Made by a program: the position numbers and the translations under genes. Shown here in pieces: positions 21,825 to 62,784 of a stretch of 64,000 nt of DNA. How positions within the stretch are numbered: position 1 is the stretch's first letter; every line of letters starts with the position of its first letter. The notes beneath the pieces were generated by a model. That model did no database searches, was not told the DNA's origin, and worked only from the letters and a program-made list of their open reading frames with translations. Origin of the DNA: Epithemia pelagica (taxonomy: Eukaryota > Protista > Bacillariophyta); assembly GCA_946965045.2 (NCBI GenBank), contig OX337232.1, forward strand, positions 3,658,001 through 3,722,000, written 5' to 3'.

Positions 21825-22722
21825 ATGCGCCAGACGCGTAGTGCTACCAAACGAGCTGAGTCTGCGAAGAAGGAGCAGGAGGACTCCGCCGCAGCTCCCT
21901 CCACAACCGCATTTCCCTCCGACAAGGGAAACAAGGCAAACAAGAAAATGAAGACAAAGACGGCCGTGGACAACAAAACGTCGAAGAAGAAGAAGACGAC
22001 GACGACGAAGTCTCCCGCTTCGACAAAGAAGCATGTGACCTTCAACCTTGAGGGTCCTTCGTCGTGGCACGAGCGCGCAAAACAGTGGCAACTCACCATT
22101 GGGGATGAAGATGGTATCCCAGTGTTCTTCGTCAGCAACAAGGACGTCGAATGCGCTAACCTGTCGGATATCGCGGCAGAGCTCCTTGCGATCGAGGCTG
22201 TCGGCAAAGAAGGTAAGTTTGATTGTTCATTGTTGGTTTTGAGTCTCCCTTTCTCACGACGCGCCCTCTGCTGCCACAGACACCAAACCCAACAGCAAGC
22301 CCGACAACAAGCCCGACAGCAAGCCCGAGAAGGAGATCAAGAAGGAGGACGACGTCGAGAACAAGACTCCAGAGTCTTATGTGACCCCGAAGAAAGTAAC
22401 TTCTTCCCCGAAGGTGGCGTCTCGAGCTTTCGCACTGACCCCCTCCCAGAAGCATGCTTTCCAGCGTCGGATTGCTGAGGAACAGGTGAAGGAAAGTGGA
22501 GCGACAGACCCTCGCCAGACTTTGAATGAGTCGCTGGCATTGGGAGAAAACATCCCGTCGTCTCCTCCTTTGTTCTTTAGCAATCCTTCCCGTGCATACC
22601 GGACATCCATTGATTCGTATGCCGATGATGGATTTCTCGAGACCCAAGAAGACTTCATCGGTACGCAGCAAAACGGGCTTTTTGGTCCCGATTACTTGGA
22701 TCATGAGGACGAGGCGTACTAG
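21825..22722 (+). CDS. Lys-rich hypothetical protein (cargo B), 2 exons
   Basis: ATG at 21825 (MRQTRSATKRAESAKK…). Intron 22213-22279 (GTAAGT…CACAG, 67 nt) joins in frame to DTKPNSKPDNKPDSKPEKEIKK…DHEDEAY*. Confidence 0.65.
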
Positions 22723-23247
22723 ATATCTACTGATGGACGTTTTAGGTATCCTTAATCACTAAATATGAATCGATTTGTCATCATGGTACTTGTAGTGCTT
22801 CTACAGTCGTTCTTGTTGTGATTATCATTATTGTCGTCGTCCAAGTCCTCGTCATTGTCGTGGCTATCATTGTCGTCGTTGTATTGTAGTCGTCCTTGTT
22901 GTAGCTATCATCGCTCATCCCGTTTGTCCTCTTCATCATCGTTATGGTCGTGATTGTCATGGTCATCATCATCGTCGTCGTCGTCATCCAGCTTCCCAGT
23001 GTCGGTAGTTGGGTCCCGGTTTGCGGGCGCGTCTCGTATGGATGTACGAGGGAGTTCGTGATTGGTCCCAGACGAGCTATGATTCTTATCTCATATTTTG
23101 CGTTTTCGACACTTCATGGAAACAAACACGACAATGTACTAAAGTATAATATGAAGGAATAAACAATAAATCTTAATGTCATACTGCAACTCAACGTACC
23201 ATGGTATTCTTTTTCAACAATAACACACTTTCACCACGAGGAAAGAT

Positions 23248-26136: not shown

Positions 26137-26548
26137 GGTCGAAACGCAAAAACTCGAAACACGAAACACAAGAAACACGAAACGCAGCATTCTCCTCAGC
26201 CCTCAGCTCACATTCCAAAAAAAAAATCTTGAGCTCACATACTAAAAAACGGTGAAGTTTTGGTATGTGGGCTGAGTTACTTAAGGATTTGCGTGCCAGT
26301 TTTGCGATGCGTGCGCGTTTTCGGAGAGGGAGGCGTGTTTCGCGCGAGGTCTGCTCCGAAAATCGTCCATTTTCTCGCTCTCTCACATTTTCGAGGTACT
26401 TACAAACTGATAATCCAACACGCAACACGAGCACGCAACACGGAAGTGATCATTGATACCAATAACTGACAAGAAATACATTCAATAAAATGGATTGCTC
26501 TTATAAATAGTTAAGTTACATGCATTTTGATGATAAATGGAGATTAGA

Positions 26549-29500: not shown

Positions 29501-29893
29501 CAACATCACTGGCCCTGTTGTTGTGTCGGAGCTTACATAAAAGAATGTGTATCTTTTCTTTTGGATTGTGACTTTGTGGCGGTACCAGCCAAACTTGTTT
29601 GATTCCGACACCTTAGTTTCGAAACAGAGTTTAAGAACAACATCTTTAGTCAAAACAAGATTCAGTCTGAATGGCGACAGTCCTGGCAGCCAAGTGTGCA
29701 TGAAGTTCACAATCTGGGTGTCTTGGATCCACTTGTTGCAGAACCCAAACGAGGATGGGGAGCATTGCGTCTTAAAGACGTCAAGAATCTCTTGTGCCGA
29801 TAAACTTCGTTCCATCCGAGACTGTGTTGCGTGGGATGAGTCGGATGATCGCGTCATTGAGTATGATGCCAACCCCGTACCTTGTTGCCCCAT
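26549..29893 (-). CDS. Large DDE transposase, IS630/Tc1/mariner-related (1114 aa)
   Basis: Putative triad LIGQDE (D at 28060), FLFDQSSGH (D at 27643) and KYHCEMAGEGIEYGWG (E at 26890). The ORF is uninterrupted and lies between TA-flanked TIRs. Confidence 0.85.
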   Translation of the reverse strand: MGQQGTGLASYSMTRSSDSSHATQSRMERSLSAQEILDVFKTQCSPSSFGFCNKWIQDTQIVNFMHTWLPGLSPFRLNLVLTKDVVLKLCFETKVSESNKFGWYRHKVTIQKKRYTFFYVSSDTTTGPVMLDDHQEWLEAADENMIRRSGRAKPTKRRNKESPGLREGTLNTSKQARNTSTPPAIKSTATQQHGQPPQIGDSPTEMQTSPPHDNTNQVLVGAIQHPELATDEIGHDHPQSLPIGFSVFESEMIQGLSQQMERAYFDEPRNRRLFAGKCDSPGSSKRNLERWIETLERAISNVEALPNVVNKGDIFPLNQEQQQRVLLKATYLQLSYKIALLDMPHGRTWLNCISEAISKMEQIYGEKVKKHPKTIARFHRYFRENDSFPHPNYHVHIGKEPSPVLFVHIPEAKVKFECWAKENLSTLTTESALMYLRTTLLPDMHTMIVQECMDTNATPVSYEAFLASMKLSTILQSTAWRCIAAAGLVFKEHTKTYFTDRHENAENVAHRAAFVKKYFKWEELSYRWVQLPTEDAIKLENEGNAGKEKLLPNSFVFEYTDVTTGKQMREYHVDAFPSEFERYIKPENTIHNGNLSHRFPSDRKPVILIGQDEPIYKQFSFSSKAWYTKDGATKMLPKDDGHGMMISAFVSRSWGFLMNGNPLLAASLFWINELRLHATHNKYVSTEAAVNLNGHTAKTPITNAQPFTRFFEYGADKEGYWNYEYMALQLEDIVDCLVVMFPAHDFVFLFDQSSGHGKQQSDGLNALNMNNDWGGAVPSMRDTQIIDQACLGPYNHDDKLRVGDVQHLVYQENDRGPVAKKGHRLNDAQRVASKNTHRTGRKKKRNLTKKELMAKLVRVMGPGMQRSFQSKNAGELQDLCKRSNIATVIEDDVIEEGWMNAAKGLFQVLWERGWIDPNNMIKYVKTTRDAWLEADKKTVKEAYQADYKKYSMVHLMSECSDFKNEKSAMEKLAEDLSERHRCRIEILVSTKYHCEMAGEGIEYGWGYSKKVFRAFSLNEKKDKAAFLRCLTASLKKTTPEIMRKMSAKARRYMLAYLLYDQNSNNRDYAAAGLSYAEIEKMSKAIKCHRSAFDQDHGFISRLWRETQGSGAVET

Positions 29894-30409
29894 TGAGGGT
29901 GGTTCAAGTAAACCCTAAAGCGTCCGGATGCAGCTCGGCAACAAGGTACGCGGTTGGGATGGCCCTCCACCATGGTCGTTAGACAACAACCGTTTTTTCA
30001 TCATTTTCGACGGAATTCTAGCGTTCGGAAGCTGTCACACATCACGGTACGAATAAAAAAATTTATTATTCAGACACTGGGTTGTCACGAGTCGGACACT
30101 TTCATTCACTAGTCAGGCCAAACGCTATTGAGGATTATATTTTATGGTACTAAATCTACGAGGGGTCTACGTCAGGAACATACTCCCTGAACTCAGCTTG
30201 TAGGAGTAGATCTTTGTGTCCTTTGTGGGGTTTGTCCGACGCAACTTTCACTATAGATCGAAACAAAGTGTGCCAACCCAGAAGAGAATGGAAGAGAACC
30301 CACAAGTGCATACACAAATCGTGTCGAGCCCAAAATAGGTCTTGTTGTTGTGTCGCTGTTCTGTGATGCAAGCCACCACAAAAGCAGAACACATTTGTCG
30401 AGGATCGCA

Positions 30410-40403: not shown

Positions 40404-40590
40404 CAAATTACGTGTGTGATACCAAGTGAAAAACTAAAATAGTGAGCATTAAGCTATGCGTCCCTCATGGGTTAGCTACTCGCCCAAAACTCGCTTAATA
40501 TCAGTCGCCTTTCTTGGTCCCCTCACAATTGCTATGTCGGACCATCACGATATAGTCACATTTTGCCAACTTCAGAATATCACATCAACA
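40404..40590 (-). repeat. 3' LTR of the copia element
   Basis: Starts TGTTGATG on the minus strand right after the PPT. Its distal 113 bp are shared with the 5' LTR. Confidence 0.75.
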
Positions 40591-46096: not shown

Positions 46097-46537
46097 GGTT
46101 GCGATTGTTCTCCTTTTTCGGACTTGTTCGGACTTTCCAGCGAAGTGAGCTTCATTAGTTTTGGGGGAATTTCCACGTCATGGTCTGAATTCTACTTGCG
46201 AGCGAGCGGTAGAATCGGAGTTGGAGTGCTTGCATAAGGTGCTAGGACGGCGCACGCCATTTAAGTAATGAACATGTCCGTATAGCGGCATCCTTCAACG
46301 GCAGGATGTGCGGCGCGTCCGCCATTGCCCGGTGTGTGCGCATACGCTGACCACACACCACAATCATCCATCTCGAGCCCCGTTGCAGGCGAGATATTAG
46401 TGAGATGAAAGGGAGTACAGGTATCCAACCTAGGGCAGTCATTCTTCCAAGCGAATGATCTAGATATTTCGCGACCTTCCCAGGCCATGGTAGTGTAACA
46501 TCTCCTTCATCGGTTAATGCAGTTGGGTCTGATAAAC

Positions 46538-46734
46538 CAAATTACGCGTGTGATACCAAGTGAAAAACTAAAATAGTGAGCATTAAGCTATGCGTCCCTC
46601 ATGGGTTAGCTACTCGCCCAAAACTCGCTTAATATCAGTCGCCTTTCTTGATAGGTCTGCCATCATCTGATCGGATATTGTAAGATTATTCGCTCTATGT
46701 CATCATCATCTGATTATCTCTCTCTCTGATTTCA
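46538..46734 (-). repeat. 5' LTR of the copia element (only 46538-46650 matches the 3' LTR)
   Basis: 113-bp match to 40404-40516. The rest is unrelated to the 3' LTR. A possible TG start lies at 46734 on the minus strand. Confidence 0.6.
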
Positions 46735-47481
46735 TGGGCGTTCTTGGATGCGAACCATCATAGTAAAATGTTGGGCCTAAATAAAGAAGACCCCAATCCC
46801 CCATCTCCAACCGAAAATCGACGACTATGACTCGGATTGGAGAGAGGTGAAAAAGGTGTGATTCGGGGTGTGGTTCGGGGTGTGGTTTCCGGGTTCCAAG
46901 GTGAGATTCAAGATAGCTATCTTAGAAAGTTAGCCTAGTTTACACCATCTTAGCCGTTCATTCAATAAATAATTCACGAGAAATATTATTGCCTTTATTG
47001 CCCCATTTACTATAGAGATATTCAGTAGGTAAAAAGGTCTGATTCGGGATATCCTTATCCTTAATAATTTACTGAATCACACCTTTTTCACCTCCAGCCC
47101 ATCAAATGGTGAAAAAGGTGTGGTTCGGGGTGTGATTCGGGGTGTGATTCGGAGAAATAGTTCTCCTCTACAACAACTCATTACACTAATATAGTAATCC
47201 CTAGCGATATTCTACAAGATAGCGATAGTACAATATTCGGCGATTAGCGAGGATCGTATGTGTATGTTCCTTTGAGTTCCTTCGAGAGCGCACGATTGAT
47301 TTTGGCACGAATCGGTTCATTCGCGCCTCAATGCTATGAGCGACTATGAGTGAGCGATACCTTTCCGCGGGAGCATTTCAACGTCAAAGATGACATTTTG
47401 TTCTCATTGACTTCCTGTTCTCATTATTTCATGAAAACAATTTCATCAAGCCTCAAACTTAAACTACAGCAACCAACCGTG

Positions 47482-48378
47482 ATGCAAACGCCCAACCTTC
47501 ATTACCTCACATTGGCACTACTACTAGCCACGACGATAAATGCCGACAACGACGTCCCGGGATGTGCTTGCCAGGCCGACACGACCTGCGGAACGAAACA
47601 TTTGAACGCCGAAGTCTTGTATCCCGATTCCTTGTTTCCCGACGTCTTAGCGTGCTCCTTGGCCCAGCGCAGCGACCCTCCCTATCGCTTTCCTGACGTT
47701 TTGGATCAACCCCTTTGCGATGGCTTGGAAGCCGACCCCGAGTTCCAACGAGCCGTGGGAAACGAATCGATCCCCTACTATATCAATGGACAGGGCGAGC
47801 CGTACTACGAAACGGGATTCGTGGCCATGAAGATCGCCCAGGGAAGTTGCGAGGATTTGATTGCTGAGCAGAATTCCTGTCCAGTGGCTACTGACGGAAG
47901 CAACCAAGACCCAGACGAGGAGGATGAGTTTGGTTCCGGAAATTCCTACAGCAGAGTCGAACCGAAAGCCTGTACCTCCTTGGGAAGGACGCTTCCCACC
48001 ACCAATTCGACGCTGAAGGTATCCTTTGCGTGCGAATCATGGAATTCACCCGACAAGAACATTACGGGCGGGTACGAGGATGGGATTTCCATCCACGCGA
48101 TCCTCGGAGAGGACCTGGATCTTTGCGGCGACGACAAACAAGCTTTCCCTCCTTCCCTGACACGGGAAGACTGGATCGAGCCCAAGGCCGGCAGCAGCCG
48201 CCGATACATGACCAAGGAAATCGTGGATGACGGGACCGAATATTGTCTGTTGGTAATGTCCATTGGGAACGAGCCCTGCCGAGGCCCACAACCCGCCTCC
48301 TCTTCGTCACGCACGACGAACAGAACTCTGCTCATGGTCGGTCCGCTCGCGCTTGCTTTTCTTTCTTGGGTTCTTTAA
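47482..48378 (+). CDS. Secreted Cys-rich protein with GPI-anchor-like C-terminus
   Basis: Signal-like MQTPNLHYLTLALLLATTINA, many Cys, and C-terminal PASSSSRTTNRTLLMVGPLALAFLSWVL. Intact ORF inside the MULE-like element. Confidence 0.75.
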   Translation: MQTPNLHYLTLALLLATTINADNDVPGCACQADTTCGTKHLNAEVLYPDSLFPDVLACSLAQRSDPPYRFPDVLDQPLCDGLEADPEFQRAVGNESIPYYINGQGEPYYETGFVAMKIAQGSCEDLIAEQNSCPVATDGSNQDPDEEDEFGSGNSYSRVEPKACTSLGRTLPTTNSTLKVSFACESWNSPDKNITGGYEDGISIHAILGEDLDLCGDDKQAFPPSLTREDWIEPKAGSSRRYMTKEIVDDGTEYCLLVMSIGNEPCRGPQPASSSSRTTNRTLLMVGPLALAFLSWVL

Positions 48379-48589
48379 GCTAGCGATCTTTCCTCTAACT
48401 TTTGATTATTGATGGATCACGTGCTCCATTTGGTAAGCTCTGCATTGGGGAAGATATACGAAGCAGTCCCAACATTAAGAATATGCCGACATGATATACT
48501 TGCCTGGAATCGGCCGCACTACAGCATGGGCCTCGCCAGAACTAATATTCTAGAATATAACAAGCTATTTGCTATAAAAATATTACACA

Positions 48590-49474
48590 GATTATTATGT
48601 CTACGGTTATCAAGTTGGGTGGCACAATGCCATGAGGTGGAAAGACACGTGGGAGTCTCTCAACGGGCAGCGTCTACAACTCTGGAAGAAATTCTTGAAA
48701 ACAGAAACTCCATGGCCGACCCACGAAATTCTTCCTTGGTGATATTTGCCTTTTGCAGTGTCGACAAGCATGCATCGTGTATAGCAGGATTAATCTGTCT
48801 GATCTTGAGTTGAGAGCGTGAAGGATAGCTTGTGATATTATTGTTCTTGGCAGCGGCGTGCGCATCGGAAATGGGACACAAATCCTCGGATAGTAAAAAG
48901 TAGCACGTCGTGGACGAGTTGTCGTTGCTGGGGCAAGTAAGTTGGTCCCGAAAGTTCCATGGTCGAGCTGAGATGAGACGCTGGCCGAGCCTCATGCCTC
49001 TGCACATGGCAAGGGACCACAGGTGCAAATCACTGCCCATTCCGCAGCAGTTTCGCCATCGAAATGTTGCCTCGGGCATACTAAGGTACAAGAACTTTGA
49101 TGAGCTGCGATTCGTTTGGCCATGGGAGAGTGCAGGTCCAATTGCGTCCAATCCAGTCGCAAACGAGCAGAAGGGACCGGCAAGGACTCTTTGTGCTCCC
49201 CAATGGATGTATCATTCGCAACGGTTGCCGGATCACGTTGAGATGTCCGATTGTCGACGTCCTGTGCGGAAGGATCTGCGGCCGTTGTGAAAGCTTGATT
49301 GTTCATAACAGTTGCGAACGGGGTCCACATGCTTTGAGAAAGACGCACACTTAAAAGGATCTGACATAGGAACACCCACACAAACACGAAGAGGGTCATC
49401 CATACAGCTTTGCTACGAATGGTGGGAAACTCATTGCGGGTGGTTCGACCTGTCTTTACTAGTAGCGGCGACAT
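48590..49474 (-). pseudogene. 5' fragment of a type II membrane fucosyltransferase-like glycosyltransferase
   Basis: N-terminal TM (WMTLFVFVWVFLCQILLSV), RIAAHQSSC, frameshift, FRWRNCCGMGSDLHLWS…PWNFRDQ…C…CYF…EFLFSRIS, stop/frameshift, VPPNLITV, then truncation. The family call is from recalled motif resemblance only. Confidence 0.5.
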
Positions 49475-50162
49475 GGAACCAAACGAGTCCACACGACAAG
49501 TATCATCGTCGTTTGTGTGTTTGTGTGTTGGGGTTTGGGGACTTCTACGACTTATCCTTAGGACTGGTCTTATCATCAGTGAGAAATATCGCCGTGGAAT
49601 GACGTGGACTCCAAAAAATTGCGGGTCGAACTACCTCTCCTTTTTCAACTACAATCGAAGTTGTTAACTTTGGAGTGAACTCTGGGTCATCTATGAAGGA
49701 CGAGATTGCGTCTTTCTCACGAGATTTGTTGGTCTCACAAACATCACCGTCTCTGCTGCTGTAGGGCAAGGTTGATTGGCCTGTAACTTTTGCCCATACC
49801 CACTTAACGCCATACGTAAGGGAGCAGTATATATACTTATCCCATAAATTCGAGCAGTATATACACTCCTCCCATAACTTTGAAGACATCTAATAATTGG
49901 AATATAGATGTCATCAGCTTTTTGACAGGTCAGTCGAATTTATCACGGAATTTTGAACATTTCTATATATCATAGTCTACACTGATTTTCCAATCCTACT
50001 CACTGTTCCGTCGATCAAAGATTGGCCACTTTCGCTCATTTTCCGCCTCCCTCGCCAGAGGTGCTACTTCGACGACCTCTATCTTCATCCACATTTACTT
50101 TGCACTGGCACCACTCTCCATTCTGGTCTGTCATATACTGAACAAGACACATTCCTAAGAGC

Positions 50163-53100
50163 ATGTCCTCCCAGGCATCGGCTGTGCCAGGAGAGACGCA
50201 GACGTCAGAATCAGTGAAATCTCCAAATTTGCTGGTCGACTCGTCCCAGCCATCTCAAGGGGAACCACCACCTCATGTTCCTGTACAAAGATCGCGTTTT
50301 TCCTATGCAAAGAAGAAGCTCATCGCCCCTCATACCTTTTGGTTGGACAGGAATTACTTGGACCGCTTTTCCGAAACTTTCCCACGCTGTGATGCGAGAA
50401 CCCCTCTTCACATGGACGGCCAGGTCGTGTCCTGCCCAACATCGAAGAATGGACAAGTGTATGTCATAGTCTGGAATCAACTACCCCATCCGAATCTAAA
50501 TTCCCAGTGGGTCAGAAGTCATTTCAAGTCGTCTCCATACGTCAAGAATATGCTGAAGGAGTACATTTTGGATTTTGTTTATCCGGGCAAACAGTCTTCA
50601 CCTCAACGAAAGAAACCCCCGCCCAATCAAGAGAATCCTATGACGGAACCCAACAACACTCGGCCAATTGATAGTCAAAGAGTAACGATGCAGGATGATA
50701 CGCGAGCAGTGACACAAACCGACAGACCTCATCTTCCACCAGCCAAAAAAGCCCCTCCCAACCCAAATGAAGACGACGACGATAGTTCAGTGTCTTCTGG
50801 GCAATTGATCCCTCAATCACAACTTCCCTCGACAACCGAACGCGCACAGCGACGGGCCCAGCTAAAAACGGCTACCGAGGAAGACACATCACCTGCTATT
50901 GGAAATAGTTCAGGTCGTTCAAACAACCAACAAGGAGAAGATACAACACCAACCCACGCTGTTGGGCCACAACAACCCGCAAGGCTTTTTGGTAGTGGGA
51001 ACACGACGGATACTGGTGTAACCTCTAGAGCTTCCCTGCGGAGTGACCCTCCGAATCAAAATGTGTCTTCTGATTCCGAATCAGAAGATGAGGAGGACAA
51101 TGCCAGAACATTCGAGGAGCACACCGATCGACCGGAGAATGTGTTGGACGAAGACAGGAGATCGGAAGCAGACGATGAAGAAGAAACAGAAGATGACGAG
51201 GCCGCAAACAACCAGAAAGAACAAACAACTATTCGTGAGATGATGAATGCCCTTGTGTTCTCTTATCAGGAAACTCCCTTGTCGCAACAAGCATCACACT
51301 GGATAGGCAACGACGCAAACCATCGATCAATGTACAGTGGTCCGGATGGCCTGAAAGACAACGTGGCGGAGAACTTCAGTAATCCCTTTGAATGTCTCCA
51401 GTATGTTGGCGGCCTCTCTATGGATGTAATAGCACACATTGCGAACTCAACAAATGACTACTTTCATCAAAGGATTGAGCCAAACCTTCCAAGGAAACGA
51501 ACTTACTATCATTCCCAAAAATGGGTTGATGTGTCAATAGAGGAAATGGTACGATTTTTGGGTTTGATTCTGATGATGTCGCTCCGACCAGTTGACGCAG
51601 GAGGATATGCGGCTCATTTTCAAACAACCAACCGTGTCTACAATATTGGAATGGCCCATCCGGTCATCGAGATAAAAGACAGTGCCGGGTGGGCTTCCAA
51701 GTACATGAAACTGGGCCGCTTTAGACAAATCCGAGGAGCTTTCCACTTGGACGAAAAGTCCAGCCAAAGAGGTGGCGACAAGTGCTACCAGTTGCGCAAG
51801 ATCTTGACTGCAGTGAATGCTGGATCCAAACGAAGCTTCAGAGTTCCACGCGACCTTGCCTTTGATGAAGGAGGTATTGGATGCCGCTCAAGATATTGCC
51901 CCGTCAGGCAATACAACAAAGATAAGCCACAAAAATTTCGTGTGGATTTCTTTATTTTATCATCATCCTCAACGTATGCTATCCTACACATTGATGTGTA
52001 TCAGGGCAAAAATCCTACGAACTCATACATCAAGAAGCAAGCACGACAGCTCCCAACCACAATGAAGGCTGTTGTGAACGCCTGTTACGCCCTACAGCTC
52101 CATAAGAGGACGGATGGCTATCGCCATGTGGCAATGGATAACCGGTACACAGCCCCAAGATTGGCTGTTGTTCTTCGTGACAGACTTCGACTGTTCTCCA
52201 CCGGAACTTGCAGAGCCAATCGGAAAGGTTGGGACAGTAAGAGATTGAACCTAAAAAAAGACCGGACCAATCGTGGGGAGTCACTGTTGTTCCATGATCC
52301 GGTGAACGGATTGATTTTCGGACAGTGGGTTGACTCCAAGGTCGTAAATTTTGTATCTTCCTACGAGGATGTGGGAAGTGGGACAGTGCGTCGTCAAGTG
52401 GGGCAAAATAAAGAAGAGTTTCTCTGTCCAGTTCCATTGATCCGATACCAGATGACTATGGGAGGGGTTGATAATGGGGACCAAATGCGATTGCAGTTTG
52501 GCGGTTTCGGCACCCGTGTGAAGTTCAAGAAATGGTACAAAAAGGCTGCCTTAGGGATTCTTGACGTCATGTTACTGAATTCCTATATAGCCTGGAACTT
52601 GTCATCAAGCGACCGTCCCCGTGCGCGGAGAATCAAACTTACACGGTTTGGGTATTATACAATCGTTGCTCAGCAGATGTGCGAATTTGTTGCTCCGATG
52701 GAAGTGGATGCTCTTGGAAGACGGGTCTCTACCAACACCGGTCGCAGAGTCTGTGAAAATGGTCATTTCCCTGTTCCAGTAGATCCCAACAAGCAAATTG
52801 GCTGCGCGGTATGCCTATTAGAATATCGATGGAGGAAAGACAAGCTGAAGATGACGGGTCTGCATTCCAACGTTGGAACCTGTGTCAAATGCGGAATAAC
52901 AGCTCACTTGGTCCATTGCGGTCACAAAAAACAACAAGGCTGGCACATTCACAATCTACCGGAATTCGACAAGCTCACATGTTTCGAAATCGTACATTCG
53001 GAACACGGAAGACAAATGTTTGTCCAAAATCACCCGTCCAGCAGATACAAGTATTCGATAAGAAAAAGCCATCCGTTGATGGTACAGCTTCGTGAAATGC

Positions 53101-53528
53101 ATGGTCTCACACCAAGGCACACAAGAACACGACGAGCACGGAATGATAGGCGAATGGAACAACGGCAACAACAACAACAACAAAGTAACGCTGCACTGCA
53201 TGACGAAGAGCAAATGCAACAAAAGCGAGGAAGAGCTCGTCTGTCACAGAATGGGATGGACTCTGACAATGACTTAGACGAAAGTGACGACAGAGAGGCC
53301 AACAGCTCATCACAGGTAGCCAGATCAAAAAGACCAAGACGATCATCCCGTCCAAGAAATATTGTTACCCAAACACAACAAGATTCAGACGAAAGTAATG
53401 ACTTGGACGATGAGACAGACAACGACTATTCGGATGGTGACAAAAGTTCATCGGACGAAGAGAACTATGAAGAATTATATGCCTCCAGTGAGGGAGAGGA
53501 CGTTCCCTCTATGACAGATACCATATAG
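50163..53528 (+). CDS. piggyBac transposase (1121 aa)
   Basis: DDD triad DLAFDEGG, HVAMDNRYT, MGGVDNGDQM. KWYKK..LGILDVMLLNSYI. C-terminal Cys-rich CAVC…CVKC…H. Intact ORF. Confidence 0.92.
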   Translation: MSSQASAVPGETQTSESVKSPNLLVDSSQPSQGEPPPHVPVQRSRFSYAKKKLIAPHTFWLDRNYLDRFSETFPRCDARTPLHMDGQVVSCPTSKNGQVYVIVWNQLPHPNLNSQWVRSHFKSSPYVKNMLKEYILDFVYPGKQSSPQRKKPPPNQENPMTEPNNTRPIDSQRVTMQDDTRAVTQTDRPHLPPAKKAPPNPNEDDDDSSVSSGQLIPQSQLPSTTERAQRRAQLKTATEEDTSPAIGNSSGRSNNQQGEDTTPTHAVGPQQPARLFGSGNTTDTGVTSRASLRSDPPNQNVSSDSESEDEEDNARTFEEHTDRPENVLDEDRRSEADDEEETEDDEAANNQKEQTTIREMMNALVFSYQETPLSQQASHWIGNDANHRSMYSGPDGLKDNVAENFSNPFECLQYVGGLSMDVIAHIANSTNDYFHQRIEPNLPRKRTYYHSQKWVDVSIEEMVRFLGLILMMSLRPVDAGGYAAHFQTTNRVYNIGMAHPVIEIKDSAGWASKYMKLGRFRQIRGAFHLDEKSSQRGGDKCYQLRKILTAVNAGSKRSFRVPRDLAFDEGGIGCRSRYCPVRQYNKDKPQKFRVDFFILSSSSTYAILHIDVYQGKNPTNSYIKKQARQLPTTMKAVVNACYALQLHKRTDGYRHVAMDNRYTAPRLAVVLRDRLRLFSTGTCRANRKGWDSKRLNLKKDRTNRGESLLFHDPVNGLIFGQWVDSKVVNFVSSYEDVGSGTVRRQVGQNKEEFLCPVPLIRYQMTMGGVDNGDQMRLQFGGFGTRVKFKKWYKKAALGILDVMLLNSYIAWNLSSSDRPRARRIKLTRFGYYTIVAQQMCEFVAPMEVDALGRRVSTNTGRRVCENGHFPVPVDPNKQIGCAVCLLEYRWRKDKLKMTGLHSNVGTCVKCGITAHLVHCGHKKQQGWHIHNLPEFDKLTCFEIVHSEHGRQMFVQNHPSSRYKYSIRKSHPLMVQLREMHGLTPRHTRTRRARNDRRMEQRQQQQQQSNAALHDEEQMQQKRGRARLSQNGMDSDNDLDESDDREANSSSQVARSKRPRRSSRPRNIVTQTQQDSDESNDLDDETDNDYSDGDKSSSDEENYEELYASSEGEDVPSMTDTI

Positions 53529-53587
53529 ATAAAAAAGAACTTTCACTTAGTAGTCTCCATTGCATATATTACTGTGAATGATACTTC

Positions 53588-54280
53588 TTATTCTTCTTCC
53601 TCATTACTGGGACGAAAGCCAACGTAGGGTTCGGAGGTGTTTTCATTCGGAAAATTGTCCCGAATGAACTCAACAAGGCAGGGAGGAAGCTCCCTACGAA
53701 CTCCACGCCCAAGTGGACCATGGATTTTGTTTGTCAAACGCCGATACAATTGGTATCGGATGGAACGATTGGATTGCCCGGTATTCTTTAGGTGACTCGC
53801 GATGGAATGAAGGTAGGGGAGGTGTTCAAAGATAAAACAGGGGTTTCTCTTGCATGTGGAGCAAACATGCTCCCAATACATGTATCCATGTGTTGCACTT
53901 GGGGGCGTGTTGTTATTCAGCTCGTGAAGGATCCGTTCAAGGCTTTCCGGACATGCATACTCCAACGGCATGAAACGAGTCTCCGTGCATTCTGGTTTCG
54001 TTTCAATCACACCACCACTGTCATCCGTGACCAGGGTGTTCGCCCTCTGAAGGGTAAACGGAACATACTCCTCTTGGTTTGTTGGGTTGTAGAACTGATC
54101 GGTGTCGATGGTGAGGTCTGTGAAAGAAATGAATGAGGCTGATGAGGTGCAGATGGACAAATATAGATACAACGATGGTGTAACGCAATAAGCACTCGGG
54201 GAACCCACCATCTGTTGCGTCCATCTTGTAGAGGGAAGTAGTGCGAATGTTTCAGCAAGGTAGATCCAATAAAGGGGCAA
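53588..54280 (-). CDS. Accessory protein with P2X7-ballast/KolX-like C-terminal motif
   Basis: CSTCKRNPC followed by RYQLYRRLTNKIHGPLGRGVRRELPPCLVEFIRDNFP…YVGF. Convergent with the transposase (59-bp gap). Start uncertain. Confidence 0.6.
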   Translation of the reverse strand: MPLYWIYLAETFALLPSTRWTQQMVGSPSAYCVTPSLYLYLSICTSSASFISFTDLTIDTDQFYNPTNQEEYVPFTLQRANTLVTDDSGGVIETKPECTETRFMPLEYACPESLERILHELNNNTPPSATHGYMYWEHVCSTCKRNPCFIFEHLPYLHSIASHLKNTGQSNRSIRYQLYRRLTNKIHGPLGRGVRRELPPCLVEFIRDNFPNENTSEPYVGFRPSNEEEE

Positions 54281-54619
54281 TGACAGTGGTGAACGACCGC
54301 TTCAATGGTCTTCACTGTGATGAGTGCAACAGAAATGACATTCATCTGAACTTAAAACGACTACTTTTCAAACCGTGTTAAGATGGGAGTAGTTTATGGG
54401 AGTCAAAGTACTGATCCCATATTTTTTATGGGAGTAGTTTATTTTCTACTCCGTTACCCTTAAAACCCGTTCCTTACGTATGGCGTTAAACAGCATGTCA
54501 GCGTTCGCTTTTTGAAGTGAAAGTGCAATAAGCCTATACTACCTAGACATTTCATTATCAACCGGTCCACCAACCTCCTCTTCCCCTTAAATCATATAAG
54601 TCTAACGTTCACTGTCCAA

Positions 54620-55115
54620 TTACGTGCTCATGTAAGTGGACATGTCAATCTCATCCGGAAGTTCAGGAATGTTGACTTCGAAACGTGACTGGACTTTGTT
54701 GAGGATCTCTTGGTCGGGCTCCGGACTAATAAAGGAGATGGCGATTCCCCTCGTTCCAAATCGACCTGCACGTCCGACACGATGCAAGAACTGGTCTGAA
54801 TCATCGGGAAAGTCATAGTTTATCACAACATTGACACGTTCAATATCAATACCACGTCCAAACAAATCGGTTGCCACCAAGATGCGGGCATTGAACTCTT
54901 TGAAGGATTTGTACTGAGAAATCCGCTCTTCTTGTTTCATCCCCGCATGAATGCAAATGGAAGGAAAGTTGCATTCCGTCAATAACCGATTCAACTCCTT
55001 GGCACGAGCGACCTTTGAAACAAAAATCACCACTTGATTAAACTCGAGTGCATCGAGCAAGTCGTTCAGTTTTCGGTTCTTTTCTGCCTCGGCAAGTTTG
55101 GCATAAAGTAGATTA
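54620..55115 (-). pseudogene. UAP56: Orphan C-terminal half of UAP56/DDX39 (Sub2) DEAD-box helicase
   Basis: [29 protein letters not shown]…[16 protein letters not shown]…[46 protein letters not shown]…DMSTYMST. No N-terminal DECD domain anywhere in the window. Confidence 0.9.
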
Positions 55116-55846
55116 CGGATCCCTGATGACATCTGCCCATATACTATGATTTAGATCCATATCATGTTTATTAGATAACTGAATGTCTAACAACTTATCT
55201 AATATAAATTTATCCGAATCACACCAGGAATCGCGAACCACACCCTGAACCACACTCCGAACCACACCTTTTTAGATCTCCCCCTCGGATCAGGGTTGTG
55301 AAGTACGCACACTCACACCTTGTACTTGACTACTAGTCCTTAAGTACACTAAAACTAGTAGCTGTTACTTTACTCTTAGTACTTTAAGTACGTCTAATGA
55401 AAGCATGTACTTTTCTTGTGATACTTACAAGATTAGTTGTCTGTGCTGATTAATTAACGTACTTAACTTTAGATAAGTAAGTACAACAATCTAACCAGAC
55501 TTACTTTACTTAGCAAAAGTATCTGTTGCCGATACTGTGCTGGTACTTTAATATCAACAAGTACCACATCATGAGAGTTTCCCTCGCCTTACTTACTCCA
55601 AGTAAGTACCTTGCTGTCTAACCCAAAGTACTTAATTTAAAACATTAAGTACGTACTTTCAAGTAATCAAAGTACCTACTTCACGCATCAATTTATCACT
55701 TACCTGTTACAGTCTGTTACATACTACTGCTCTCCAAGCTCCAAGGTACAAGTGCAGCGTTCAGTGCAGTGCATAGTGCATCCTGTGTTCCTTGCCCAAT
55801 TCCAATCCCATTTTCCAATCCAAGTAATGAGACATCCCCATTCACC

Positions 55847-57574
55847 ATGTCGATGGATTCTCTCATAGATGACAATTCTCTTCTGCAATTCACATCAACT
55901 TGTCACATCGAGTGGTCTCTGTCATGCTGTGACTCATATTCTCTTTTCATTGCGGACAGTATTACTTCATGCATTCTGGCTCCGCACGAGGAACAATTAC
56001 ATGCGGTTGTTACTGCCTCTGCCTCCTGGCTGAACCGTAATCAGCATTCGATAAAACTTCAGACTCTCTCGGAATGTCAAGCAAGTCACCATTGTATTAT
56101 ACCCAGATTTTCTTTCGAACAACTCCTTTTTCAAGTTAGCTCCCTTATTCTCCAATGGCTCAATGGAACAGACGAACACAACCTTATTTCCATCACATCA
56201 CATGACGAAACAACCGATCTTTATCTTGAAGTAAAATGCACACCGAAGTTCTCAATCTCCCCATGTATGGGTTGTTCCCAGTGCACCTCCTTTGTCATTG
56301 ACGAAATCAAGGAATATCCCGACGACTCTTTGCTGAGTATTGTTCTTGCATGGATACAGCGCAATCAAGCCCAATTCGTTGTCACTGATACCCTAACAGG
56401 TGTCTCCACTGTTCCCAACTCAATTGAAACGGTAATGGAAATTCTACTGAATTATATATCGGAAAAGATAACTCAATTACCGACTCCACCAGACCCCCTA
56501 AGCACACCACCCGTGTCCATCCAAGATGTATCCAAAAAAGCCTCTGACGATTCCACCACATCCTCATTATCTCAATCCACGAACTCTGTGCAGAATACGA
56601 AAACATCTTCTCCTAAAAAGCTCAGTCCATCCCGCCACAAGTACCAAACTCGGAAACAGAATTCTTTACTTTCGAGAGAAATCATTCTTGGGTCAAAATC
56701 TCGCAACAAAGTACAATACAATGATGGGAAAGGACCACGTCGGTTCATGCATGGCGACCCATTCAAAATATCCCCAAGTCGCATTACATGCCCGAATTTA
56801 CCACTCCGGCCATCCGCAACAACTATCGCAGATCGAGAAGCTTTCCTTGACGAACTACAAGCCTTCCACAACGTGCTTAAAAGTTCTGGACTCCATTCTC
56901 CTCGTGATGCCTGGGAAGAATGGATGGACATGGTGGCAGGTGATGACAAACTAGCGGACAAGGCCTTCATGTGTCTCATAATCATTCTTATGAGCTCGAG
57001 TACAACAGACAGTCAATTAGCGGCATTCATTCCCAAAATATTCTCTGCCGGTGTTACCTCCGCTGATGGTGTTCTCGAAGTGGTAGATCGCATTGGAATT
57101 GACTCCTTTTGTGCACTAATTTCTCCAGTTGGCCGTTTCCATCAAAATGCCGAAAGGATTGTCCATTCGGCATCGTACTTTGTCACCAGATATAACGGCA
57201 GGATCCCCAAGGACATATCCATACGAGAGTTGACCTCCTTGTTTGGAATTGGATACAAGACAGCACAAATTGTTGTATCCACTGCATTTGACCGAATAGA
57301 TGGCATCCCATCTGACGTCCATGTTATGCGTTGGTGCGAGGCACTGAAATGGACACCACCACTTTCAAACGACGGTCTACTCTGTTCGAAGTGCATAGAA
57401 CAATGGCTGCCTCCATCAAAATGGGGAATAATCAATCCCCTGTTTGGTGGAATTGGTCAGCTGATACAAAATCCGGAAAAACGTCCGCAATTGCTAGCAT
57501 TATTGGACGAGAACGGCTCTGACATGCTACAATCTATGATTCGCCTTATTCTGAAAGCTTACGGTAAAGACTAA
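55847..57574 (+). CDS. HhH-GPD (endonuclease III/Nth-like) DNA glycosylase with long unknown N-terminal region
   Basis: LIIILMSSSTTD, ISPVGRFHQNAERI, RYNGRIPKD, HhH LTSLFGIGYKTA (Lys at the lyase position), GIPSDVHVMR (catalytic Asp), WLPPSKWGIINPLFGGIGQ. No C-terminal 4Fe-4S Cys motif. Likely ATG at 55847. Confidence 0.85.
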   Translation: MSMDSLIDDNSLLQFTSTCHIEWSLSCCDSYSLFIADSITSCILAPHEEQLHAVVTASASWLNRNQHSIKLQTLSECQASHHCIIPRFSFEQLLFQVSSLILQWLNGTDEHNLISITSHDETTDLYLEVKCTPKFSISPCMGCSQCTSFVIDEIKEYPDDSLLSIVLAWIQRNQAQFVVTDTLTGVSTVPNSIETVMEILLNYISEKITQLPTPPDPLSTPPVSIQDVSKKASDDSTTSSLSQSTNSVQNTKTSSPKKLSPSRHKYQTRKQNSLLSREIILGSKSRNKVQYNDGKGPRRFMHGDPFKISPSRITCPNLPLRPSATTIADREAFLDELQAFHNVLKSSGLHSPRDAWEEWMDMVAGDDKLADKAFMCLIIILMSSSTTDSQLAAFIPKIFSAGVTSADGVLEVVDRIGIDSFCALISPVGRFHQNAERIVHSASYFVTRYNGRIPKDISIRELTSLFGIGYKTAQIVVSTAFDRIDGIPSDVHVMRWCEALKWTPPLSNDGLLCSKCIEQWLPPSKWGIINPLFGGIGQLIQNPEKRPQLLALLDENGSDMLQSMIRLILKAYGKD

Positions 57575-57620
57575 GTTGGTTGAATGTTCATTAAAATACT
57601 ACTTTAGTTCTTCACTGGTG

Positions 57621-60600
57621 TCAATGTTTTTCCTCGTCGTCTTCATTGGTCTCCTCATCGTCCTCATTGGAGTCGTCGTCTCCCACCTCCTCTTCTTCTT
57701 CCTCCTCATTGGCATCCTGGAACTCCTCTTCTTCCTCTTCATCCTCATTCTCCTCATGCTCTGAATTTTCATCTTTATCGTTATCTGACAAGGCATCAAG
57801 CAATCTACGAGAGAAGTTGCTCTCTTTTTCCATATTGTCCGATTGTTCATCGCTCCGACCTGATTGAGTCAATCGTTGTTTGTTCTCTTTCTTCTTCTTC
57901 TGTCTAGGAGACCGCCTCAATTCTTCGCTTCCTGATGACCTTTTTCTCGCTGGTGGTGGATTTGTCTTCTTTGTCGTTGACTTGGAACTGGATGTTGTTC
58001 TAATTTTGGACTGCTTGGCCTTCTTCTGACTCGAAGTTGTTGGTGTTTGGTTAGCCTTCCTCTTCTTCTTTGACCCGGATTCAGGTCCTGCCGTATCGTC
58101 CTTTTTTTGGCTCATCGCTTTTCTCTTTCGTTCCTCGACTGCTTGTTTCCTTGATCTTTCTAGTGATTCAAGACGGTCCATTTCTTCCTGTAGATGAACT
58201 GTGATGGCTTCATCTGTGTCAATGTCTTCTTCGACATCACTTTCCTCATTGTCATCACTGACATCAGACAAGTCCAATGATACTGGCTGTATGTCGTCTG
58301 CTGGCATCGGTACTGTGTCGTCGTTGTTGTCGTCTCCCAAGTCTGGATAGTACTCGTACACAGGTTCCGGTGTGCTACTTGCGAGAATATCGGTCGGCGG
58401 ATTTTTCTTTGCGTTGAAATCTTCCAATTCTTTAGTCGCTTCCTTCAACAACATGTTTCTCAGATATTCTGCCTGCTCTGTGTTCTCGAACAACTGTGGA
58501 GCCCGCTTCTTGCCAGGACCCGAGTGTGTTTCTGCCCCAATTTCTGTCGACGGCAAACTTGTTGCATCTGGATTGTGTTCGTCCGCTACCGAAGGTGCTT
58601 CATTCGCTGTTGTGTTTGTACCGGTGGCATCTTGCCTTGTTGTTGCTTGGTTGTCTCCCCCCTCTCGCGAGTCGTTTCCGATCGTTTCATTAGTAGTATT
58701 GCCATTGTTATCGTTGTCTTCGTCGTCCTCAATGACAATCACATCTTGTTCCTTCTTTTGATTTTCTAAGGCAATCTCCCTTTGAACAATATCCAATCGG
58801 ATTTTTCGTGTCAGCTTCTCCATCGCCCTCATCTCGAAGTTCTTGGCGGTAGTTTTGGTCTGCAACTTGTTTTGTTGAAACCACGAACCAAGGGAAAACA
58901 CACGCTCTTGGAAGGCGTTTGTGGCGGGCTTCGTGAGCCATATGACAGCTGTTGGGAAGACATGTTGGTAGTTGTCCTTGTTTTTCTCCCACCATCCCAT
59001 GACGTCGAAATACTTTCCCACAACAAGGAAATCTGTATCTTGGCATGCCGCAATGAACTGGGCTTTTTCCGGCCCTTTCCATTTCTTGGACTCGGTAGTG
59101 TATGCCTCAGTGGGGTATTTAGTGATCGCCTCTTGCCATCGACCATCGATTTCTCTTTTACATGCACGACGGAAATCTCGGAGACTATCTTCGCATGTTT
59201 GTCTCAAGACCTTGGCCACACGTGCTTCTTCCTCAGCAGCAGACGCCTTACCAGTAATGTTCAATAATGCTCTCTCGTTCAGTTCCTGAGATTCTCGAAA
59301 GTTGCGGAAAGCATTGAACTTTTTGAACGGTACATTTGCAGTTGGAAGAGAGTTGGTCTCTTGCGTCGTATTGCTTTGGGTTGTAGGAGTGCTGCTCTGT
59401 TGTTGTGTTGCCATCAACGAACCAATTCTGGAGTACGACTTGTTCGAGAATTTTTTGATCATGTCCCTGAGAAAAAGTTCCTTCACACGGGCGCCATCGT
59501 TCTGATCATACACTCCCAATGATTGGAAGAACTTAACAAAGATGTTCGTCATCAATGGATGGGCCATAAGAGCCTTTTCGGAGTCATCATTGATGGAACC
59601 ACCATCGTCGCGGACTCTACGCCGTTCCGCCAACAAGGTCTTGAACTCAGCAATGATACGTCGAATAAGAGTCCGTGGACCTGCTTTCAACTCCCCAAAA
59701 GACATGGGATCCCGTTGGCGATCTAATTGGGAAATGGTTATGTCTCCATTCCATCGTTTGTTGACTGGTGTTGTAAGTTTCACTGGAAGACAACCAATGG
59801 AATTGACTGTATTCTTCATTCGATGAGCATAAGACCGAGCGAGATAAATTTGCATTAGGGCAGCGGAAGAGGATCCTGGTTCGTCGGACTGAATGGAGAT
59901 GGAAACCTCCTGTAGTACGACCAAGATTGCCTCGTATTGGGCCAGTGTTTCCCATTGTTCCTGCTGTGGATAACTCTCTTTGAAGTCAGGGTCGGTACCA
60001 AAGTGACGTGAGGCGTAGTCGTCAAAGCACCATTTGTTCCTCAACAAATACTGGATGGTAAGCACACATCCAGAAACACGTGTTTCATTAGGTAGCGGAA
60101 TCTGGACTACGCTTTGGTTCATACGTTCCATTTCTGTGCGAACAGTATCAAACCGGTGGTTTGCCTTCTTGGACATCAACCACGCTGCAAATTTTTTGAA
60201 AACTGAGTACAGCTCCACAAAAGCCTTGTTGTCGTCCACCACTCTCTTATCTCTCGTCCGGACAACCAACCCTGTGGCGTGTTTCAAGACCAATTCGGCC
60301 TTATGCATGTCGCATTTGCCCACATTGGACGAACCCGTTATATATTTCCCTGCAAGCACAGCCGAAGCCGTGTTGTCGTTGACGGACGAGCAGAGATCAC
60401 TTTTGTGAAAGCCCACTGTCTGTAGTAAAGAGTGAGTCAGTCGCGCAACTTGTACAGCAGTGTGACCTTTAGTCTGTGCCAAACCAATTGGGATGCGATA
60501 CACGGCACAATTGCGAGGATCACAGAACATGACAGTGACCCCAAGTACATCGTACTTCTTAGCCTGCCACACATCATGGCATACAGTGGCGAAAGGGATT

Positions 60601-61459
60601 TCCTGTCGGCAAACCTTTTTGTAGTGTTGCCGGACACGGTAGGAAAGCTTGGACACTGTTCTGATGAAATCTTGATACGAAGCAACACGCATGGATGTTA
60701 CTTCGCGACGACTGATCACCTCAGGCCTGGATTCACGAAGAAGATTTGCATTTTTGATAGCAAAGTCGATCATCTTGCGGAACTCTGGCTTCTCCACAAT
60801 AGAAGCGGGTAGACAACAGTCGTTGACGCACTGGTATATGTGTTGCTGCATTTGTTGTCGAATGTTTCTCTTCGTGATCATTCCAGATCCATCGCCACGA
60901 TACATCGTCATTGTCGTTTGCGTCGGACTAGGTTGTTCTGGTGCGTTCGGATCGTCCTTTGTTCCTGGGATGACGAAGTCTTTGTGCTTTCCGTCAGTAT
61001 GCTGTTTTATATTGGAGGGCTTGCCGGTCAGCATGACAACTGCATTAGACAATGGAGTCTCTGGGTCCTTCATACACAACGGGCATAGAACACATCGCTT
61101 GGCAATGAAGGAAAACGGAGTTTTGTAGTCGTCTTTGCTGCTGAGGCTTGTTCTTTTTGGGCAGCCTTGAAAGCTTCGTTGATGCGTTGGAAACCTTTAT
61201 ACATGGTCAAATTCTGTGGATCGTGAGAACTCACAAAGGCCGAGAACTGTACCCAGTCAATGTGGACAGCAAATTTCCAAAGGGGCGACACATTGTGATG
61301 TCCAAAGTGGTCGGAAGGTAGCTCTTGACATTTGGGAACAATCTCCTTTTCTTGTAGGATGAACGACCGGAGAGACTTCTGTTGTGCAGCAATTACTTTC
61401 TCCGATTTCTTTCTCTCAGCATCACGGTCAGCTTTCTTTTTCTTTTGACGGATGGGCAT
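57621..61459 (-). CDS. hAT transposase with BED-like finger, apparently frameshifted near the N-terminus
   Basis: Motifs VCHDVW, VNDNTAS, CDMH, NETRV and ATNAFQERVFS. BED-like CVLCPLC…SNIKQH. The N-terminal segment from ATG 61459 (MPIRQKKK…PLWKF) is one base out of frame with the main ORF, with the switch at ~61110-61190. Confidence 0.85.
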
Positions 61460-61471
61460 GATGATATAATG

Positions 61472-61653
61472 ATTGAAGGAAGCACTGATGGACAAGAGAG
61501 ACTTGTTGCTGTTGTTGTAGATTATGAGAGGACAACAAGTTACAAGGGACCGAGAGGCAACAATTGAAGGAAGCACTGATGGACAAGAGAGACTTGTTCC
61601 TGTTGTTGTAGATTATGAGAGGACAACAAGTTACAAGGGACCGAGAGGCAACA
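61472..61653. repeat. 91-bp tandem duplication upstream of the hAT transposase
   Basis: attgaaggaagcactgatggacaagagag…gggaccgagaggcaaca at 61472 and 61563, with one mismatch. Confidence 0.9.
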
Positions 61654-62784
61654 ACATTCATCCATGTTGGCATGAGACATGGATTGAAAGATATAGGTGC
61701 AAGCGAGTTTTGGAGATGAATGAGAGAGTGGAGAGGCTACTTGCTCCATACTGTGATGTACTTATGGACTTAGAAGTAGATATATACAAATAATAGTACT
61801 TACCGATAGAGCTTTAAGTACGAAGAGAGGTGCTAAGGTACTTGATAGGGGTACTTAAGGTGCCGGTGAGGAGTAATGGTACTTGATAAGGGTACTTAAA
61901 GGATGAGGGTGAGGGAAGTGGTACTTCATTAAGGGTACTTAAGGTGGAAAAAAAAAGAGACGGTACTTGATGAAGAAGGCCTTGCGAAAAGTAAAGGAAT
62001 TGGTATTGATCGAAGGGACTTGGACAAAGGCAAAGGCAAAAGTACTGAAAAAGTACCGTTTTGGCGAAAAATGGGTACTTGGTACTTCACAACCCTGCCT
62101 CGGATTGCTCATTGTATTATACTCGTAATCGATGTTGCAGAGAATTAGATGACTGCTATGCTAGACCGGCTTGCTGGACTTTATCGAGATCTTCAGAAAT
62201 GTATATCTCAATGTCCGTCCAATGAGACGACCAGTGAGCAAGTAAGACTGCTGTCATGATTCATGATGGGTTGGTCGTAATACAAAGGTCATCAACAATA
62301 ATTAATTTACGACCAACGGTTTCCTCTAGAATGACCCAAGGCGTCAAACGCAAAACAATCTTTGTTGGTCCTTTGGGATGCGGAAACGCTCACAAATTGG
62401 TTCTCACATTTTTTGGAAAAGGACTCACACCGACTACACCGCAAGGAACCAACCATACCGCAAAATGGATGTTAAAAAACGAGGAGTCAATATCCCCGAC
62501 AGTGACTTGCCTGCTGAGAAACCAAATATTTCCTTTGAGAATATCAGGACAATGACATTGCGACAGCTGATGGGTATGTTGGATTCAGTTACGGACATGA
62601 GTAAATTATGCAGGATCAAAAAAGCAATCGAGTTGAAGAGAAGATGGGAAGGATTAAACAAGGCGAAGAGAAGATCCTCCTCTTCGACGAGTCGCGCATC
62701 CTCTTCGACGAGTCACGCAACCTCTTTGACGAGGAAGAAGAAACCGAACCAACGTGTGTTGGATTCCACGCAACCCGACGGTGA

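Follow-up and report, generated by a model that had tools for sequence, protein, structure and literature searches.

Introduction

Can a DNA transposon of a diatom pick up host genes in the way that is known from the Pack-MULEs (Pack-type Mutator-like elements) of plants? This question is raised by a 64-kb stretch of the Epithemia pelagica genome (contig OX337232.1, positions 3658001-3722000; G000:C5:3658001-3722000 in our numbering), hereafter the window, in which a first-pass annotation had proposed a Pack-MULE-like element flanked by 9-bp target site duplications and carrying pieces of host genes. PMC6446971 treats Pack-MULEs as a plant phenomenon. Following comparison of the window with the whole genome (60.5 Mb in 23 contigs), it appears very probable that this element, here called element A, is a non-autonomous cut-and-paste transposon from a small, divergent Mutator-like family of four copies, and that it is of the Pack type, with a cargo originating from contig C17. 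The core of the initial proposal is thus sustained by three independent copies bounded by 9-bp duplications, the differing interiors of these copies, a donor locus at 99-99.7% identity and the lack of a transposase of its own. Throughout the text, coordinates without a contig prefix are window positions and C-numbers (C4, C5, C6, C9, C16, C17, C18) designate contigs of the genome. The features discussed are collected in Table 1.

An element framed by a 9-bp duplication

As read directly from its ends, element A proper spans 46840-55283 (8444 bp). The left boundary reads ...gacgactatga CTCGGATTG, followed by the element beginning GAGAGAGGTGAAAAAGGTGTGATTCGG, while on the right the element finishes ...CCGAACCACACCTTTTTAGATCTCCCC at 55283 and is followed by CTCGGAT, the rest of the duplication having been displaced by a younger hAT insertion. 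The annotated duplication of CTCGGATTG at both ends after removal of this hAT proved correct: excising the hAT together with one copy of its own 8-bp duplication restores CTCGGATTG right behind 55283, and the motif has only two occurrences in the 64-kb window (Table 1). The ends had also been described as imperfect terminal inverted repeats of about 100 bp in exact register. The register is exact, the motif AAAAAGG standing 10 nucleotides from the duplication at both ends, but the similar part is only about 50-60 bp long. Indeed, the inverted-repeat identity between the two ends is 39/48 over positions 11-58, while the outermost 10 nucleotides (GAGAGAGGTG vs GGGGAGATCT) agree at only 2/10.

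Left-type end repeats occur three times in the 5' region, twice in direct orientation (46846-46887 and 47108-47161) and once inverted between these two (47074-47103); all three are present in both long copies of the family (C5 and C18). Since no 9-bp duplication fits the inner repeats, they were taken as internal structure. A reading of 46840-47103 as a separate miniature inverted-repeat transposable element lying beside a second element was rejected, both on this ground and because the C18 copy contains the entire 420-bp arrangement as well.

A genome-wide search for the terminal motif returned only a handful of places, with four right ends in total. The C18 copy has the same first and last bases as element A and has ATGTTTTCG on either side, duplicated 9/9; the C9 copy has the same ends and is flanked by GACGACAAC, likewise duplicated 9/9; and a fourth right end is located near the start of C6. 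With a chance probability of about 4e-6 for each perfect 9-bp duplication, three independent 9/9 duplications in exact register are no coincidence and therefore define a real transposon family, called family A, that makes 9-bp duplications. The anticipated association of the terminal motif with such duplications elsewhere in the genome is thus borne out on C18 and C9.

Comparison of interiors covered the C5, C18 and C9 copies. Element A and the C18 copy are alike only at their ends (lengths and identities in Table 1) and differ in their interiors. The C18 copy contains an open reading frame (ORF) of 794 aa (L008:6223-8607) and the first 2194 bp of a mariner-like element that is flanked by TA, present in high copy number and of the same family as window positions 20453-30200. 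The C9 copy is a short derivative with about 310 bp of family sequence, broken by other insertions.

A cargo copied from one block of C17

Between its family-specific ends, element A carries about 3.2 kb that are a colinear copy of C17:2300118-2304715 (minus strand), at 99-99.7% identity. The fragments could hence be mapped to their donor as had been suggested, and what had been presented as the capture of fragments from multiple loci is instead the copy of a single contiguous block. Regarding the three cargo pieces, pieces 2 and 3 together differ from C17 by 6 mismatches in 2251 bp, and piece 1 by about 10 mismatches in 1000 bp together with a 30-bp indel. Missing from the element are 1440 bp of C17, namely a segment of 1319 bp (C17:2302369-2303687) together with one of the two copies of a perfect 121-bp direct repeat on either side of it. 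At the donor locus, this arrangement of a perfect 121-bp direct repeat around the 1319-bp segment occupies C17:2302248-2303808 (L022:8248-9808), and the segment itself has a 97% copy elsewhere on the same contig (C17:1651171-1652458).

The direction of copying can be read from the two loci. C17 carries a complete UAP56/DDX39B/Sub2 orthologue, with DEAD and Helicase_C domains and an E value of 1.6e-154 to the structure of human DDX39B (8enk), and this gene extends well past the boundary of homology. No family-A ends were found at C17 by the genome search for ends, and no cargo sequence was detected in the genome beyond C5 and C17. C17 is thus the donor and C5 the partial copy. The donor block starts about 100 bp upstream of a small cysteine-rich gene, takes in a decayed gene fragment resembling glycosyltransferase family GT23 and extends into the UAP56 gene, of which it includes the 3' half. 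The internal genes are accordingly not syntenic single-copy loci, which would have spoken against a capture, but duplicates of the C17 block. Outside the donor block, about 870 bp beyond its edge, an ORF of 1265 aa encodes a hAT dimerisation domain (C17:2305581-2309375; L023:1581-5375).

Genes within the cargo

Among all cargo ORFs of at least 90 aa, Pfam recognized nothing but Helicase_C. The helicase domain belongs to the 170-aa ORF, which confirms the annotated UAP56 fragment as real. The ATG of this ORF (55130-55132) is inside the element's own 3' region, beyond 55106 where C17 homology stops, and the ORF is thus a chimera of transposon and host sequence.

What had been called an intact surface-protein gene is an intact ORF of 342 aa, but the surface protein remains a fair guess, with no family, Atlas or other match behind it: Pfam gave no family and the ESM Atlas no usable lead. 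The product has a hydrophobic stretch near its N terminus, a hydrophobic C-terminal tail and many cysteines, features with which it may be secreted or surface-anchored. Within their first 211 residues, about six substitutions and an indel of 10 residues separate the copy from the donor protein. At C17, the 121-bp repeat provides the cysteine-rich gene with two alternative hydrophobic C-terminal tails, of which the transposon copy has the second.

The third gene piece had been annotated as a glycosyltransferase fragment. It is a fragment, already at the C17 donor, and its glycosyltransferase identity is plausible, with only a weak, sub-threshold resemblance to GT23. The reading frame of this dispersed repeat (48.6-49.5 kb) was ambiguous by tblastx and was settled via long ORFs at paralogous loci. 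The parent family consists of proteins of about 480-530 aa encoded at no fewer than 10 loci in this genome (L013:969-2561 on the minus strand, with paralogues at L014-L017) and is restricted to diatoms, its homologues coming from the raphid pennates Mayamaea, Amphora, Cylindrotheca, Pseudo-nitzschia and Epithemia. The family protein itself has no Pfam hit and a PDB sequence search with it returned nothing; of eight homologues, five match FUT8_N_cat or NodZ, models of GT23 fucosyltransferases, weakly and below threshold. With five close paralogues as input, AlphaFold gave a model with a pLDDT (predicted local distance difference test) of 29, which was unusable.

Later insertions and neighbourhood

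The largest ORF of the interior (50163-53528) encodes the transposase of a nested piggyBac and not that of element A. The statement that the element holds no transposase was thus right for its own family, since tblastn with the 794-aa protein and with the 1277-aa protein of family B (see below) found nothing significant anywhere in the 64-kb window, but wrong to the letter given the piggyBac enzyme. All the features of a piggyBac are present, i.e. the TTAA duplication, short perfect ends (with TTAA, 49804-49821 and 54472-54489) and a DDE_Tnp_1_7 transposase. Across the insertion point C17 reads ...CCCACTTAAACAGC..., which is the empty site, so that the piggyBac arrived after the capture. The hAT is equally typical, with an 8-bp duplication CCTCGGAT (55283-55290 and 62098-62105), short ends and an ORF with a hAT dimerisation domain.

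The order of events can hence be followed. Family A inserted at CTCGGATTG; the cargo was copied from C17, before or after this insertion; the piggyBac then entered the cargo at TTAA, as its empty site at C17 shows; and the hAT, as its own duplication shows, inserted onto the last base of element A. Judging from divergence, which is about 1% or less everywhere, all these steps are recent.

Several additional observations were made on these insertions and their surroundings. Within the hAT, a 601-aa ORF (55769-57574, plus strand) has a sub-threshold match to an HhH-GPD glycosylase (E 7.5e-4), and two tandem 91-bp units, 99% identical, are located at 61472-61653 near its right end. In two of the four family-A copies, hAT-type ends (CAGGGYTGTGAAGTAC) are found on the right end or within about 40 bp of it (window 55283-55291; C9 L009:6413-6436), and piggyBac ends are found inside two of the four (C5; C6 at L057:5664-5681). 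A preference for such targets may be involved, or no more than the abundance of transposons in the neighbourhood. In the left flank, the end of a repeat present in at least 40 copies comes to within about 186 bp of the insertion site (46340-46653, 40404-40516). Pieces of this repeat occur as pairs spaced by about 6 kb and resemble the long terminal repeats (LTRs) of a retrotransposon spanning roughly 40.4-46.65 kb.

Table 1. Coordinates of element A, its cargo, the nested insertions and the copies of family B
Feature	Position	Strand	Remarks
Left copy of 9-bp target site duplication	46831-46839	.	CTCGGATTG
Left terminal inverted repeat	46840-46910	+	starts GAGAGAGGTG-AAAAAGG, then three 12-bp units GGTGTGRTTCGG
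Own 5' region of element A	46840-47258	+	common to C18 copy, 420 bp at 98.8%
Captured host DNA, part 1	47260-49807	+	copy of C17:2304715-2300735 (minus strand)
Cargo piece 1	47260-48295		C17 2304715-2303688
Intact 342-aa ORF	47350-48378	+	copied from C17, no family match
Cargo piece 2	48175-49807		C17 2302368-2300735
Frameshifted GT23-like fragment	48596-49492	-	residues 38-354 of ~531; multi-copy diatom gene family
Nested piggyBac	49808-54485	+	perfect 14-bp ends CGCCATACGTAAGG; TTAA at 49804-49807 and 54486-54489
piggyBac transposase ORF, 1121 aa	50163-53528	+	PF13843, E 1.2e-45
Cargo piece 3	54486-55106		C17 2300738-2300118
Captured host DNA, part 2	54490-55106	+	copy of C17:2300734-2300118; contiguous with part 1 at donor
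170-aa ORF	54620-55132	-	C-terminal helicase domain of UAP56/DDX39B (Helicase_C)
Own 3' region of element A	55103-55283	+	common to C18 copy, 181 bp at 99.4%
Right inverted repeat	55213-55283	+	ends AGATCTCCCC
Right duplication, first 7 bases	55284-55290	.	CTCGGAT; remaining TG at 62106-62107, past hAT
hAT insertion, 6807 bp	55291-62097	.	perfect 16-bp ends CAGGGTTGTGAAGTAC; splits right duplication of element A
CTCGGATTG as read after hAT	62099-62107	.	hAT-made duplicate of 7 bases and original TG
Family-B copy	G000:C6:3166074-3172543 (L054:4074 to L060:543)		1277-aa protein at L054:5666-9499
Family-B copy	C16:~819242-825778		
Family-B copy	C17:~2890737-2896530		

A sister family and its transposase

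Paralogues of the 794-aa ORF of the C18 copy led to family B, a 6.5-kb element with copies on C6, C16 and C17. Its 9-bp duplications are GGTATTTAC on C16 and CCATTATTG/T on C6, and its termini read GAGGGAGGATAATTTTGTGAG... and ...CACATTTTTGTATCTCCCC. Over the first 10 nucleotides, families A and B agree at 7/10 on the left and 8/10 on the right, with no match between left and right ends. The two families are clearly related and have in common the asymmetry of their ends. The ORFs of family B are intact and its two best copies are 99.6% identical; deletion derivatives of the family are present on C7 and C9 (C9:2248008).

The 1277-aa protein of family B has 902 relatives, retrieved by an exhaustive HMMER search, of which 34 were aligned. 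Invariant in this alignment are a Cys/His finger (C228, C234, C239, C264, C277, H319) as well as D445, D523, C561, H564 and E660. The protein itself has neither a Pfam transposase hit nor a Pfam MULE (PF10551) hit; the Pfam GCM domain matches five of the 34 relatives and the Ulp1 peptidase one. A PHROGs search gave no match and a word-indexed search was little informative. In the AlphaFold model, most of residues 180-700 have a pLDDT above 90. Foldseek matched this model to the GCM domain (1odh, E 2e-5) and to ISCth4 of the IS256 family (E 6e-5, probability 1.0), compared with E 0.02 for the hAT transposase Hermes. IS256 is a bacterial relative of the eukaryotic Mutator. The N-terminal zinc finger is of the WRKY-GCM1 type, by which MULE transposases of the Mutator superfamily bind DNA (PMC1702500). 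Beyond the core, a C-terminal extension of about 550 aa bears a faint resemblance to ubiquitin-specific peptidases and ends in a Cys-rich motif. Taking together the GCM/WRKY finger, the modelled IS256-like fold and the 9-bp duplications, the best reading is probably a divergent lineage of the Mutator superfamily.

The first-pass annotation had also called for an autonomous MULE with the same terminal inverted repeats. It was looked for in the genome and not found, no family-A right end being joined to a full-length transposase. The C18 copy, considered as an autonomous partner, was rejected: its 794-aa ORF is homologous only to residues ~599 onward of the 1277-aa protein and has neither the DNA-binding finger nor the first two of the catalytic Asp; this copy is thus non-autonomous as well. 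Searches with this ORF gave no match in Pfam, nothing by sequence in the PDB and only weak leads in the ESM Atlas (UCH/USP clusters and one MULE cluster, all scores <0.9). Short forms of 794-850 aa (C18, L008:6223-8607; C4, L055:~5750-8182; proteins P0001 and P0169), devoid of the DNA-binding domain and of the first two catalytic Asp, occur at two loci of this genome and again in another assembly, in which a 1395-aa long form belongs to the same 90% cluster. Either they arose repeatedly by deletion or they represent an accessory protein that has been retained.

How the cargo was acquired

The junctions of the cargo are informative as to its origin. On the right, the C17 sequence and the 3' region of the element overlap by 4 bp (ATAA), while on the left the element reads ...GGATCGTA, then one extra base T, then GTGTATG.... 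In the C18 copy, the mariner-like fragment begins directly after the same ...GGATCGTA, with TA as its target, and this position coincides to the base with the left junction of element A. Because the boundary of the cargo matches the end of a nested mariner-like element in this way, we tentatively propose that the common ancestor would have carried a mariner-like insertion, that a double-strand break may have occurred inside the element at the end of this nested element, and that the break would have been repaired by copying the ectopic C17 template and rejoining at short homology. The internal region of the element would have been replaced in this manner by a recent copy of the C17 block. Mobility would rely on a transposase acting in trans, the nearest candidate being the 1277-aa protein of family B. 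We regard a capture via a break at the nested mariner-like end as possible, at somewhat less than even chances.

The classical Pack-MULE route, by which the gap left after excision of element A was refilled from a sister copy with the polymerase switching to C17 and back, accounts for the ATAA overlap on the right and for an imperfect homology, ATTAGCGAG, near the left junction, and the C9 copy is a short internal-deletion derivative such as abortive gap repair yields. It does not predict the base-exact match of the left junction with the mariner-like end, which would become incidental, and we hold this route to be rather unlikely. Either route would produce a Pack-type element. A further alternative is a composite (macro-)transposition, in which two separate family-A elements flanked the C17 block and their outer ends moved the whole segment to C5. 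The three left-type repeats of the 5' region (direct, inverted, direct) show that ends can be duplicated within the family, but there is no family-A sequence at C17 today, no inner ends are present at the cargo junctions, and the same end regions of 420 bp and 181 bp, triple repeat included, enclose unrelated contents in the C18 copy; this scenario is thus very improbable. That the arrangement on C5 is a chimeric join of repeats made during assembly is a natural suspicion in a region crowded with mariner-like, LTR-like, piggyBac and hAT elements. It is hardly credible, as all nested elements keep intact and matching duplications in register (9 bp, TTAA and 8 bp) and as the cargo is not identical to C17 but set apart from it by point changes and an indel.

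Regarding the transposase, the family could belong to another DDE superfamily in which 9-bp duplications are likewise made, in which case the Pack-MULE label would be wrong while the capture would stand. We consider this unlikely, as 9-bp duplications together with a GCM/WRKY-type finger and IS256 as the best fold are the combination expected of Mutator (PMC1702500), one of the 34 aligned relatives has a weak match to Transposase_mut (PF00872, E 0.002) and none has a KDZ, hAT, P or CACTA family match. Membership in the Mutator superfamily is likely, even if several observations weigh against it and against the Pack-type reading of element A as a whole. Sequence and profile comparisons of the family-B transposase with the 29 canonical MULE genes of this genome were all negative, and the structural Z score for ISCth4 (11.4) exceeds those for Transib (9.8), hAT (9.2) and P (8.9) by a modest margin. 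The subterminal repeats differ between the families (GTGAGTT in family B vs GGTGTGRTTCGG in family A), so that family A would be only a putative target of cross-mobilisation by the family-B protein, and there is no full-length family-A transposase in this assembly, none of the four right ends being linked to one. Host DNA is present in only one copy among the family-A interiors compared, and the capture may have happened in place, since nothing shows movement of this single-copy element after it. Finally, divergence is higher in the first kb of the cargo than in its remainder (about 1% vs 0.27%), and a 30-bp indel is found there.

Comparison with known systems and outlook

Element A resembles the plant Pack-MULEs (Jiang et al. 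2004, as cited in PMC6446971) in being non-autonomous, in having inverted-repeat ends and 9-bp duplications, in carrying host gene material without a transposase of its own family, and in a chimeric ORF running from element sequence into a captured gene fragment. Element A is unlike them in residing in a diatom, in being known from a single copy and in its cargo, a contiguous stretch of about 3.2 kb from a single locus with an entire small gene in it, where the Pack-MULEs of plants typically carry short fragments, often from several loci; moreover, its outermost 10 nucleotides are not mutual inverted repeats and its transposase lineage is not recognized by the Pfam MULE model. Among diatoms, an active MULE of Phaeodactylum tricornutum makes 9-bp duplications (bioRxiv 10.1101/2023.01.02.522487) and has in common with element A long inverted-repeat ends and recent movement. 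It is autonomous and its transposase contains the Pfam MULE and SWIM domains, whereas the family described here has a GCM-type finger, no MULE match and a long C-terminal extension faintly like ubiquitin-specific peptidases. In another stramenopile alga, the brown alga Ectocarpus, giant non-autonomous DNA transposons that carry only non-transposase genes, as does element A with respect to its own family, have been called 'analogous to Pack-MULEs' (PMC12477816); the passage concerned names no donor loci, while here the donor and both junctions are resolved to the base.

Regarding the transposase itself, ISCth4 (PDB 6xg8, 6xgx) is the best structural match to the DDE core of the 1277-aa protein, with a sequence identity of only 8-13%. 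The finger of this protein matches the GCM and WRKY domains as in the MuDR/MURA-type transposases that contain WRKY-GCM1 fingers (PMC1702500), but the protein has no significant sequence link to MuDR.

The gene pick-up known from plant Pack-MULEs thus also happens in this diatom, with one event documented. The broader claim of the first-pass annotation, that Pack-type gene shuffling operates in this alga, goes further than this one single-copy event can carry, and the process is not thereby shown to shape the genome at scale. In plants, transposons that duplicate gene pieces are documented to give rise to new chimeric genes, but in algae such duplication is hardly documented. Since donor and recipient, the two junctions and the succession of transposon events are all readable to the base, this locus offers a clean natural example of how a capture happens. 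Whether it is the first base-resolved Pack-type capture in a diatom, made by an unclassified Mutator-related lineage with about 900 relatives and triggered by a break at a nested mariner-like element, is a composite proposal that is rather unlikely to hold in all its parts; if true, it would reveal a route of transduplication in which the cleavage made by one transposon loads cargo into another. This possible role of a nested transposon's cleavage is, with the unannotated transposase lineage, the more interesting by-product of the analysis. The lineage is widespread and is missed by the standard domain models, and its recognition hence matters for the annotation of diatom genomes.

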